64,000 nt of DNA from Cyanophora paradoxa CCMP329 (taxonomy: Eukaryota > Plantae > Glaucophyta), in the NCBI GenBank assembly GCA_004431415.1, contig QPMI01000015.1:124001-188000 (forward strand), written 5' to 3'. Of this stretch, positions 9,669 to 14,317 are shown in pieces. Positions within the stretch are counted from its first letter, which is position 1; every line of letters starts with the position of its first letter. The notes below the pieces were generated by a model. That model saw only the letters and a program-made list of their open reading frames with translations. It ran no database searches and was not told the DNA's origin. The position numbers were made by a program, and so were the translations under genes.

Positions 9669-10763
9669 ATGGAGCACAGGCGGGACACAGTCAAGCGGCC
9701 GCCGCCTACGCCCGTGAAAACCAGCGCAGACAGCGCGCCGGAGAAACCCGGCGAGCAGGCCGAGCAGCCCATGGCCAGCGACGAGCCCGACTGGTCGGCG
9801 CATGAGCCGGGTACGGAGAACAGCAGCGCGCAACCGTCCAGCGACAGCTCCAGCTCTGATCCATCGAAGTACGCGACCGACCGGGCGGCAGCCGCACGCC
9901 GGGCAAAGCGCCGGAAAGCCAAGAAGCACCGTCAGCACGTGAAGCAGCTCCACGACGGCAGGGATGAGTATAACCAGAGCCGACAGCAGCGCGAGCGGCG
10001 CCCGCGGCGCCAGCTGGAGCTCAGCAACACCCCCGATCCCGCGCCAGCGCCGGCGCTTCCCGCGCTGGAACCACCTCTTGCGCTGCCGGCGCCAGAGCCC
10101 GCTCCAGATTCAGCAGACCAACTCCCATCTCCAGCTCCCACGGCCGCCACAACCTTCGCGGCCGATTTCGCGCCCGTCGCTCTTTCAGCTCCCGCCCCGG
10201 ATGCGCAGCCGCAGGCGCCGCCTGAGCCGGGTGCGGAGCTCGGGTACAGCGGCTCGCCGCCTTCCGACAGCTCCAGCTCCGATGAGTCGAAGCACGCGAC
10301 CGATCGGGCGGCAGCGGCACGCCGGGCCCGGCGCAAGAAGCTCAAGAAGCAGCGCCAGCACAAGCAGGCGCTCTCCGCTGGCAGAGATAAATACAACCTC
10401 AGCAGACCGGAAGGCAGGCGCCGACAGCAGCGCGCGCGGCGCAGGCGGCGCCAGCTGGATCTGAGCGACGCCCCCGATCCCGCGGCCGCACCAGCGCCGG
10501 CCCTTCCAACGACGGAACCACTTCTTGCGCTTCCAGCGCCAGAGATCGCTCCATGGCCAAGATCAGCTGCCCAACTCGCGCCTCCAGCTCCCCCGGCCGC
10601 CACAACCTCCGCGGCCGATTTCGCGCCCGTTGCTCTTCCAGCTTCGGATCCCGGGGCCCCGGATGCGCAGCCGCTGGCGCCGCCTCCCCTTCCTGCGGGC
10701 GTCTGGAAGTGGCATGCCCTTCAAAAGGCTTGTATTTTGGACTGGCATTGCTTTGAAAGGTAG
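9669..10763 (+). CDS. Orphan low-complexity basic/Pro-rich protein with an internal ~140-aa duplication
   Basis: Intact 364-aa ATG ORF with two diverged units (SDSSSSD..ATDRAAAARRA.R.K.KK.RQH...GRD.YN.SR...QL.LS..PDPA...AADFAPVAL) at ~9835-10220 and ~10260-10685. Confidence 0.5.
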   Translation: MEHRRDTVKRPPPTPVKTSADSAPEKPGEQAEQPMASDEPDWSAHEPGTENSSAQPSSDSSSSDPSKYATDRAAAARRAKRRKAKKHRQHVKQLHDGRDEYNQSRQQRERRPRRQLELSNTPDPAPAPALPALEPPLALPAPEPAPDSADQLPSPAPTAATTFAADFAPVALSAPAPDAQPQAPPEPGAELGYSGSPPSDSSSSDESKHATDRAAAARRARRKKLKKQRQHKQALSAGRDKYNLSRPEGRRRQQRARRRRRQLDLSDAPDPAAAPAPALPTTEPLLALPAPEIAPWPRSAAQLAPPAPPAATTSAADFAPVALPASDPGAPDAQPLAPPPLPAGVWKWHALQKACILDWHCFER

Positions 10764-12059: not shown

Positions 12060-12875
12060 ATGGTGAAGATCAAGGACGGGCAGGTGCGTCGGAAGCCTGC
12101 CGAGGTCGAAGGGCGGGGCGGTCGGGGGCGGGCGCGCGGTCGATGCCGGTCGCACTCTATGCGCTTCTTCCCCCTCTTCGTTTCCAACGCACCCGCGGGA
12201 TAGCTACCGCGCGTCCGTGAGATGGGGCCACCGACAGCCGCCGGCCGCATCTCGTCAGAACGACTGCAGTTCTAGCGTGACCGGGGCCGGTTCGCCAGCG
12301 GCTCACCGCGTACGCGCCAGATCGTGCGGGATGAGGAGGCAGGCACGTCCGCGCCCTCCAGCTCCTCCGCGGGCTCTTCGAGCGGCGGCGGCGACGGAGG
12401 CGGCCTCTTCCAGCGGTGGATGAACTGTATGGCGTGGCTCGAGTCGAAGAAGATCTCGCCGCGCATGCTCCTCATCATCTCCATCTTCGCCATGATCTTC
12501 TTCGGTGCGGCCGGCCGGCCGGACGCGGACCACATGCGCATACGCGTGCCCCGCGCGGCTCCGCTGAGCGTCGCCCCGCGCCATGCGCAGGGATGAAGGG
12601 ACTCCTCATCGTCGGCGTCCTGATCGGCCTCGCGCTGCTGTACGCCAGCTCGCAGGGCGGGCCGCAGGGCGCCAGCTCCAGCTCCGGCGGCGCCGTACCC
12701 ACCGGCAACCGCCTCGGCGGCGGCGGGCGCGGCGCCAACATCCGCGGGGTAGGGGACTTGCCTAAGCCCCCTCCCTCCGCCTGAGGTCCGCTCCCCCCTC
12801 CCCTCCCCGCTTGAATTCGATCCCCCGGCCGCCCCGCCGACGCCCGGCCGCGGCGCAGGTCGAGGCCCGTGCTAA
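12060..12875 (+). CDS. Candidate selenoprotein: FAM241/DUF4605-like membrane protein with a SelK-like Sec tail (139 aa, Sec134)
   Basis: Exons 12060-12083, 12321-12504, 12591-12785 and 12859-12875, all GT-AG. Product: MVKIKDGQIVRDEEAG...KISPRMLLIISIFAMIFFGMKGLLIVGVLIGLALLY...NRLGGGGRGANIRGVGDLPKPPPSA-U(TGA 12782-12784)-GRGPC-TAA. A SECIS-like hairpin lies downstream. Confidence 0.8.
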
Positions 12876-12919
12876 GCGCGTTCTTAGCACGGGCCCTGCC
12901 CTCTCCGCTTGCGAGCGGC

Positions 12920-12997
12920 GCTCCCCGCGGCCTCTGTGACGCGCGCCGGCCCACCGCACCCCGTGCGAGCCGCCGCGCCGACCCGCCGCCCCGGAGC
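12920..12997 (+). promoter_or_regulatory. Type II SECIS element, non-canonical (GUGA core, C-rich apical bulge)
   Basis: Helix I: gctcc/ggagc and gcggc/gccgc. Core: GTGAC (12936-12940) opposite CGAC (12979-12982). Helix II: gcgcgccggc/gccgccgcgc (9 of 10 pairs). Bulge CCAC, then mini-stem cgcac-ccc-gtgcg. Confidence 0.75.
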
Positions 12998-13244
12998 CCC
13001 TCACCCCACCGATGGCGCCGGCCCCCGCGCCGGCCCGCCCAGCTCTCTCATGTACATAGCTCCTCGTCATTCCAACCTTCTCCTCCCGACGCCCCGCCAG
13101 GCAACGCCCCAGCCAGCTCGCTCCCAGCCCTCCGGTCGGGAGCTCGACGCGGCCAGCGCGCGCGCCCCTGTCGTCCCGGCGTCCACTGTGTCCGTGAAGT
13201 ACTCTCTGTTCCGCACAGCTTACAGCTGCCACTTTCGCTCGGCG

Positions 13245-14168
13245 CTAAGATGCGGGCGGGGCGGGCCCGCTGCGCGTGTAGTGGACAAGTCCCCACGTGA
13301 ACAGGACAGTGAAGGCCATCCCGCTGCGGGGTTCGGGGCGTTAGAGCAGCGCACGTCGGGGCGCCCCCGGCAGATCGGGGGAGGCGGGTACCTGTAGACG
13401 AGCCAGCGATCCGTGTACTCCCGCCGCTCGATCATGCGCATGATCGTGTTCGAAAGGCCCAGAGAGTTCATCACGTCCAGCATCCGCCGCTGCACGCGCT
13501 GCGCACGGGGCTCGCCACCACGCCGCGGCTGGCGGGCGGGCGGGGGGCGGGGCGCGCCTTGAGCCGCTCGCGCTGCCCGACCAGGTTGCGGAGCACATCG
13601 GCGCCCTGCGTCAGCATGCCCTCCACCGCAGCGTGCGACCGGTTCAGCGACGTTCGCTCGTTTGTGAGCATGTTGATCACATGGCTGTCCCCGCCCTGCA
13701 CCTGCGCCGCCTCCCGCGTCGGCCGGCCGCGAGCGGCGCGACTGCGCGGACCCGCCGCGCCGCACCTGTTGCCTGCCGCGGAAGAGCGCCTCGCGGTCCG
13801 CCGCTTCCTTCTGTTTCCTGAATGTCCGCTCCATGTATGTGTCCATCGAGCTCCGCAGCGCCGTGTACTCGTCGGCGACTTGGTTCGACTTCCTGCGGCC
13901 GCCGTGCGTCAGGCGCCCGTGCCGCCGCGCGCGGCTCGCGCGTCGCACGGCCGCACTTGCGCCACATCTCGCGCCGCTGCCCGGGCTCCATTGCGACGAG
14001 CCCGTCTAGCGTCTGGATGAGGCGGCCGAGCTCATTCAGGCTGCGCGACAGCTCGCCCTGCAGTTGCAGCGATGTGTCCTTTCCGCTCTCTAGCAGTTCC
14101 AGCTGGTGCTGCACCGCAAGTGTCGTCTTCTTCACTTGCGTGAAAACCTGATCTATCTGCTGCGCCAT
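13245..14168 (-). CDS. GOSR2: Membrin/GOSR2/Bos1-type Golgi Qb-SNARE
   Basis: Spliced product MAQQIDQVFTQVKK...RREMWRK|...DREALF...ERTSLNRSHAAVEGMLTQGADVLRNLVGQRERLK|RVQRRMLDVMNSLGLSNTIMRMIERREYTDRWLVY|..GMAFTVLFTWGLVHY. The LGLSN..MR.IERR...D SNARE motif is followed by a C-terminal TM segment. Confidence 0.9.
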
Positions 14169-14317
14169 CGCTGCGCAGCCGCCGCTGCGGACACTAGCTC
14201 TGCGATCTCCTGGCGCGTGCTTCGATATGTCCCTCGCGCTGCTGCGTGCTTGACAGGGCGCGTTCAGTTTTCGCGTACCCCGCAAGTTTTGCAACTGCGG
14301 CGAAACAAAGCGCTCCA

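Follow-up and report, generated by a model that had tools for sequence, protein, structure and literature searches.

The selenoproteins closest to the one described here are SelK and SelS, a family defined by architecture rather than by sequence (PMC10650576). SelS forms a Cys-Sec bond (PMC10650576) and acts in ERAD (PMC10650576, PMC6844570). In mammalian SelK, the Sec codon lies in the penultimate exon beside the last junction (PMC4105750), and a stem-loop is found after the stop (PMC6844570). Such local structures can act in either direction: the SRE of SelN raises recoding, and the proximal stem-loop (PSL) of SelS/SelK lowers recoding in SelS (PMC6844570). An algal survey lists SELENOK, SELENOS, PUB, Hypo and other selenoprotein families (PMC7539508). 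In the draft genome of Cyanophora paradoxa, SecS, eEFSec and selenoproteins were found and SBP2 was not found (Liang et al., PMC6627142); SBP2 was counted in glaucophyte transcriptomes (PMC6627142). A second point of comparison is FAM241, which is ER-associated, of unknown function, reported as absent from single-celled eukaryotes and not reported as a selenoprotein; it has a conserved N-terminal motif of 20 residues, as in FAM241B, and its membrane segment lies close to the C-terminus (PMC11880036).

The window analyzed here, that is, the whole 64-kb stretch of C. paradoxa DNA, contains a gene that resembles both groups in part. It is made up of the following features, and we regard it as very likely on sequence grounds that its in-frame UGA is decoded as selenocysteine.

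12060..12083, plus strand: coding exon 1; Met start; K-I-K-D-G-Q forms part of the N-terminal K/R-I-x-[ND]-G-x-V motif
12084..12320, plus strand: intron 1, 237 nt, GT..AG; spliced out in runs X1 and X2
12321..12504, plus strand: exon 2; Ser/Gly-rich linker and first membrane helix (about 12459-12503, residues 55-69)
12505..12590, plus strand: intron 2, 86 nt, GT..AG; splits a Gly codon at the hairpin turn; spliced out in X1, X2 and X8
12591..12785, plus strand: exon 3; second membrane helix (about 12593-12652), Gly-rich linker, conserved motif, UGA
12737-12775, plus strand: conserved N-I-R-x-[VI]-x-D-L-P-K-P-P motif within exon 3
12782..12784, plus strand: in-frame UGA, putative selenocysteine 134; UGA at the matching place in 5/5 lineages with DNA
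12786..12858, plus strand: intron 3, 73 nt, GT..AG; starts one base after the UGA; spliced out in X1 and X2
12859..12875, plus strand: exon 4, coding part; G-R-G-P-C, then TAA (12873-12875); Cys139 codon at 12870-12872
12864..12895, plus strand: 13-bp hairpin, SRE/PSL-like; in the spliced mRNA, it begins 6 nt past the UGA, and the UAA is buried in it
12927..12989, plus strand: type II SECIS; helix I, GUGAC/CGAC core, 10-nt helix II, unpaired CCAC, 5-bp mini-stem

The four joined exons give 420 nt, or 140 codons, of which just two are stops, codon 134 (TGA) and codon 140 (TAA). The spliced mRNA reads U-G-R-G-P-C-stop, and the product has 139 residues. All three introns are removed in the RNA contigs of runs X1 and X2, which come from separate studies; in X8, a third run, intron 2 is removed as well, and run X18 is unspliced where it covers the gene and looks like DNA. 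A sequence-only reading had proposed this four-exon GT-AG model of 139 residues, including the 73-nt intron just after the TGA, and both the model and the 12785/12859 junction were borne out by the contigs of the two studies. The contigs extend upstream of exon 1 to about 12012. Since they are unstranded and merge the selenoprotein gene with its convergent neighbor, they do not prove a single transcript. In X8, the contig of the neighbor stops at 13029, downstream of the SECIS. The coverage of 12859-13029 in X1 and X2 would therefore come most simply from the selenoprotein gene.

The public protein that matches exon 3 (EukProt EP00741, Cyanophora paradoxa tig00000076_g2328.t1; hereafter P0001) starts at an internal Met, with the N-terminus missing, and uses a donor at 12749 that bypasses the UGA and results in a frameshifted tail. 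This donor is absent from the RNA contigs and was rejected. The expectation that standard annotation would truncate the protein was thus wrong in its detail, since the public model is mis-spliced instead. Wherever the family was met, it was mis-annotated, being either cut at the UGA or mis-spliced around it.

Homologues were sought with the region before the tail. A HMMER search with residues 1-82 of P0001, the tail excluded, gave one relative, a 140-residue protein of Mantamonas plastica (CRuMs; E 5e-4), which ends D-L-P-K-P-P-P-S-S, exactly at the position of the Cyanophora UGA. A profile search then found proteins of Leptocylindrus danicus and Trieres chinensis and one metagenome eukaryote protein. 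Their E-values are weak (2e-3 to 7), but all three have the hydrophobic hairpin and linker, and all end at the position of the Cyanophora UGA. In addition, a DNA pattern for I-R-x-[VI]-x-D-L-P-K-P-P, written without the TGA, gave 33 metagenome matches. A TGA stood three or four codons past the motif in 6/6 matches with the N-I-R context vs 1/27 of the others; these six comprise five family loci from three lineages and one PUB-domain protein. The pattern matched no viral contig, and the three matches in prokaryote genomes had neither the family linker nor the UGA (0/3). L004, which has a TGA at the same offset, was rejected as an unrelated bacterial-looking protein. The family as it stands includes Cyanophora, two diatoms (Leptocylindrus and Trieres), Mantamonas and three further protists, with pairwise identities between lineages of 25-43%.

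With exon 3 or P0001 as the query, word-based protein searches recovered nothing beyond the mis-modelled gene itself, the PDB sequence search gave no match, and the Atlas search with residues 1-82 of P0001 gave none above 0.80. The Atlas feature search with the Mantamonas protein returned a diatom cluster first (0.92, 175 members), an oomycete cluster at 0.87 (52 members) and a DUF4605 cluster third (0.86, 187 features). It is worth noting that in L007 (1298-4373), L034 (32-1765) and L037 (5001-6552) the family gene and a ciliary B9-domain gene converge; in L007, TMEM107 follows. This B9 neighborhood is conserved in two flagellates of 30% and 46% G+C; L007 and L034 are taken to come from flagellates because they adjoin the ciliary gene.

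In the five lineages with DNA, the reading frame continues past the UGA as follows.

Cyanophora: U-G-R-G-P-C-TAA
L034 and variants: U-G-R-G-G-C-TAA
L002/L007/L024/L033: U-S-R-G-S-G-C-TAA
Leptocylindrus (L001/L003): U-C-K-V-TAG
L032 (diatom-like): U-C-V-TAA

In all five, the UGA is followed by Cys within six codons and then by a different stop, UAA or UAG. G-R-G-x-C is kept between Cyanophora and L034 with synonymous change. The Sec position is 6th from the C-terminal end in Cyanophora and L034, 7th in L007, 4th in L001 and 3rd in L032. The spacing between Sec and Cys varies, and no other Cys is conserved. In the diatom members P0003, P0004 and L032, the N-terminal motif is lost or altered and Cys follows Sec directly. 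This U-C order is the reverse of the C-U order of thioredoxin reductase.

The SECIS of Cyanophora has its core strands at 12936-12940 (GUGAC) and 12979-12982 (CGAC), and the unpaired CCAC at 12951-12954 carries CC for AA. It lies 78 nt after the UGA in the mRNA, with the core 60 nt past the TAA. The element had been noticed before as a SECIS-shaped hairpin about 45 nt past the TAA; the SECIS stands, but helix I starts about 51 nt past the TAA, and 45 nt marks the outer flank. It departs from the consensus twice, with CC for AA and with CGAC where the 3' core consensus is KGAW; cytosines in place of AA are known in a few SECIS elements (PMC3753652). Canonical AUGA/AA SECIS elements are found 100-160 nt after the stop in Leptocylindrus (L001), L007 and L034, whose sequences have 30-46% G+C. 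A SECIS is thus seen in 4/5 lineages; the L032 contig ends 188 nt after the stop.

One descriptor matches the SECIS of all four lineages, with 0-1/150 shuffles matching in each, and since it was written after the sites had been seen, this is not a blind test. The same descriptor finds one site in the whole 64 kb on both strands, and 0/150 shuffles of the Cyanophora 3' UTR. The folding z-score of the Cyanophora SECIS alone is modest (-1.6 to -2.3). The Rfam SECIS models gave no match in the window; since they also missed the canonical diatom SECIS, this blank is uninformative. This CC-type element, with its CGAC core, is relevant to the SBP2 that was not found in the draft Cyanophora genome, and the two together may reflect relaxed SECIS recognition.

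The hairpin after the UGA has a z-score of -4.1, and 10/1404 matched random 50-mers were as stable; a weak Rfam MIR164 match in the window corresponds to this hairpin. Its first pair is at +7 after the UGA in Cyanophora, L034 and L007, and the paired letters differ at several positions. The SelN SRE is likewise separated from the Sec codon by a six-base spacer. With z-scores of -3.8 in L034 and -6.7 in L007, the hairpin, of 12-18 bp, is conserved in position across three lineages. It begins at +11 in L032 and at +8 in the PUB-domain protein, and Leptocylindrus has no confident hairpin. A stable stem-loop right after the Sec codon is also the arrangement of the SelN SRE and the SelS/SelK PSL (PMC6844570). 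In the Cyanophora family, the stem extends from coding codons through the true stop into the 3' UTR, and it is kept by position, not by sequence, across supergroups. A hairpin fixed in this way is a ready-made system for testing how Sec insertion beside a stop is tuned by local RNA structure.

Taken together, the splicing, the UGA and Cys conserved in five lineages, the SECIS in four and the post-UGA hairpin strongly support the selenocysteine call. The selenoprotein call of the sequence-only reading, with coding sequence beyond the TGA and a 3' SECIS, has held up well: homologues have the TGA at the place of residue 134 in 5/5 lineages with DNA and a SECIS in 4/5. Its idea of the following Cys as a possible partner of Sec is supported by conservation.

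The relationship to FAM241 is less firm. DUF4605 (PF15378) is the best Pfam match for both the Cyanophora protein (20.3 bits, E 5e-4) and the Mantamonas protein (21.7 bits, E 2e-4), both below the Pfam cut-off of 27 bits. Among eight aligned members, two have the match, and six, including the stramenopile-type members, do not. An exon-by-exon Pfam search of the Cyanophora gene gave nothing, because intron 2 splits the DUF4605-like turn, and the Atlas fold search gave nothing. The likeness to FAM241A/B (C4orf32, C10orf35) lies in the size of 112-160 residues, the short conserved N-terminal motif, the variable linker, and a hydrophobic stretch with an F-G-M-[KR]-G-L-L turn that weakly matches DUF4605 positions 22-52. 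The N-terminal motif appears to resemble the starts of FAM241B and SelK. In FAM241, the membrane segment is near the C-terminus, whereas here about 50 extra residues with Sec and Cys follow the membrane part.

From these sequence likenesses, we somewhat favor the view that the membrane hairpin is a distant homologue of DUF4605/FAM241, in which case animal FAM241 would be related to this family but lack its Sec tail. The link is suggestive, and the Cyanophora protein is not filed as FAM241. Of the earlier assignment to a FAM241 type, the weak DUF4605 likeness remains; the cut-off was not reached and most members lack the match. Searches for literature linking FAM241 or C10orf35 to selenoproteins found nothing relevant. 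The family might then link FAM241 to SelK/SelS. A bolder reading, which we put forward tentatively and which falls a little short of our favor, combines an undescribed family that predates the Archaeplastida/SAR/CRuMs split, a Sec-bearing FAM241/DUF4605 of which animals kept the N-terminal motif and hairpin and lost the Sec-Cys tail, and a recoding hairpin whose six-base distance from the UGA is the same across supergroups. If the FAM241 link is true, it would overturn the published view that FAM241 arose with animals, and two human proteins whose function is unknown would gain their first mechanistic lead, one that points to redox or quality-control complexes of the ER.

There is another possible interpretation of the same likenesses. 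The selenoprotein could be a divergent SelK/SelS member or a paralogue already catalogued as SelK/SelS-like, SELENOK, SELENOS or a 'hypothetical' algal family, in which case its likeness to DUF4605 would reflect convergence of a small membrane hairpin. Since SelK/SelS membership is a matter of architecture, the tail and terminal Sec of the Cyanophora protein would fit. Both are small membrane proteins with a disordered tail rich in Gly, Pro and basic residues, Sec near the C-terminus, a type II SECIS and a stem-loop just after the UGA or stop, and in both mammalian SelK and Cyanophora the Sec codon lies in the penultimate exon. However, with queries that ended before Sec, neither Pfam SelK nor Pfam SelS matched any member or exon at E<=10. 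SelK and SelS have one N-terminal helix, whereas this family has a two-helix hairpin in mid-chain. Their Sec is second or third from the C-terminus, and here it is 3rd to 7th from the end, so that the ranges touch in L032. SelS also has a Sec-Cys pair, but its Cys precedes Sec; in the Cyanophora family, the conserved Cys comes 1-6 residues after Sec. The family also has a tail motif of its own, N-I-R-x-[VI]-x-D-L-P-K-P-P, which does not occur in the Lobanov 2007 supplements; no searchable paper contains it together with 'selenoprotein'. Furthermore, no SelK is listed for Thalassiosira pseudonana (PMC2375036). We consider a catalogued SelK/SelS protein unlikely.

The sequence comparison suggests instead that the Cyanophora protein would work like SelK/SelS and is not a SelK orthologue by Pfam. 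The SelK/SelS-like character of its tail, proposed earlier, is supported by conservation and composition: 50% of the 46 tail residues are G, P, R or K, 28% are Gly, and one is acidic. As for the statement that it is not a catalogued SelK orthologue, non-orthology is supported by the lack of a SelK/SelS Pfam match, and the cataloguing part applies to the portion of the selenoprotein catalogues that was covered. Neither that portion nor the literature searched yielded a description of the family. Few new families of eukaryotic selenoproteins come to light, and members of this one occur in at least three supergroups. It would add a third sequence type to the SelK/SelS group, and its Sec-then-Cys pair can be tested on a short peptide.

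Two other protist selenoprotein groups should be compared. The first is represented by the PUB-domain protein mentioned above (L027 223-1062 / L042 1-738; PUB E 1e-14), a soluble protein with an internal motif of the same type as the family's N-terminal one (R-V-M-Q-N-G-V-L) and the same tail, ending U-G-TAG. Its hairpin from +8 is strong, and there is no clear SECIS within its contigs. PUB domains bind p97, and the protein has a further stretch that we take to resemble a p97-binding motif. This suggests that the Sec tail may be a mobile module of p97-linked proteins. Algal PUB-domain selenoproteins also carry a C-terminal Sec on a flexible tail but are soluble, without the membrane hairpin or a Cys after Sec. 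The Ostreococcus proteins of PUB type end G-C-U-G and lack the D-L-P-K-P-P motif; Ostreococcus hypothetical protein 1 (PMC2375036) looks like a PUB-family selenoprotein. The second group is MSP (Ostreococcus, Chlamydomonas, Dictyostelium), a protist membrane selenoprotein with a U-C dipeptide, as in the diatom members here. In MSP, however, Sec is N-terminal in a multi-helix protein, and the MSP alignment compared (PMC2375036) has no motif in common with the Cyanophora family.

The extension beyond the UGA could also arise without selenium, if a near-cognate tRNA (Trp, Cys or Arg) reads through the UGA, stimulated by the hairpin, to give a minor extended isoform. A strong hairpin a few bases after UGA also marks programmed readthrough, and a hairpin follows the UGA in most of the lineages. 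Moreover, the SelN SRE promotes readthrough of other stops (PMC6844570). The downstream SECIS in 4/5 lineages would have no place in this scheme, and the following Cys fits a Sec redox pair. In addition, leaky UGA contexts have C as the next base, and in this family the base after the UGA is G or U. Readthrough is therefore very improbable. Scarcely credible, and already largely refuted by the UGA/Cys conservation, the homologue SECIS and the DNA-pattern matches, is that translation truly ends at the UGA, giving a 133-residue membrane protein, with intron 3 in the 3' UTR and chance SECIS-like and hairpin shapes in DNA of about 72% G+C near the gene: UGA is a common stop in Cyanophora (PMC6627142 supplement), and the SECIS is modest in z-score and unmatched in Rfam, but UGA, Cys and then UAA or UAG recur in 5/5 lineages, G-R-G-x-C is kept through synonymous change, and the canonical homologue SECIS, likewise missed by Rfam, lie in DNA of far lower G+C.

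For the selenocysteine-containing protein, the following mechanism can be proposed. With high confidence, the SECIS in the 3' UTR would direct the ribosome to insert selenocysteine at the UGA; the hairpin six bases after it probably tunes the insertion, and five more residues would then be read up to the UAA. Hydropathy and AlphaFold (pLDDT about 75 in the helices, pTM 0.25) give helices at residues 55-69 and 71-90 joined at Gly70. AlphaFold shows disordered stretches on both sides of this hairpin, and 49 residues follow the second helix. By analogy, and with moderate confidence, the two short hydrophobic helices with their Gly turn would hold the protein in the ER membrane, its two ends facing the cytosol; in the predicted model, the helical pair is possibly re-entrant rather than a spanning hairpin. 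The K/R-I-x-[ND]-G-x-V motif lies near the start of the Cyanophora, L007 and L034 proteins. The N-I-R...D-L-P-K-P-P motif is probably where a partner docks.

The flexible basic Gly/Pro tail would carry Sec134 and Cys139, which may cycle between a reduced form and a selenenylsulfide. Because Sec is followed in every case by a Cys, although at varying distance, and this Cys is the only conserved one, we hold such a bond on the cytosolic tail to be likely, with good confidence. At moderate confidence, the selenenylsulfide would be re-reduced by thioredoxin and thioredoxin reductase, and Sec134/Cys139 would act on disulfides or peroxides at the membrane. The most likely setting, again at moderate confidence, would be p97-linked protein quality control, as for SelS and SelK. 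We lean slightly towards a role in ER quality control with p97, given the SelK/SelS analogy and the same tail on a PUB-domain protein. As a whole, a 139-residue selenoprotein of an old protist-wide family with a Sec-Cys redox mechanism at the membrane appears probable.

Several neighboring features were also observed in the window. On the opposite strand, a spliced RNA runs across the 5' part of the selenoprotein gene. In X8, a loose contig end consists of 12088-12096 joined to 12193-12203 and continuing from 12307, which defines two minus-strand GT..AG introns (12097-12192 and 12204-12306) with typical donors, both within intron 1 of the selenoprotein gene, in one contig of depth 3.7. At 9669-10763, there is a 364-codon ORF composed of two imperfect internal repeats that have acidic, Pro/Ala-rich and basic stretches. 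The convergent neighbor, at about 13200-14170 on the minus strand, encodes a membrin/Bos1-type SNARE (V-SNARE_C E 1e-7) and has four RNA-confirmed introns, one of which is GC-AG (13499-13557). The 3' UTRs of this SNARE gene and the selenoprotein gene probably overlap.
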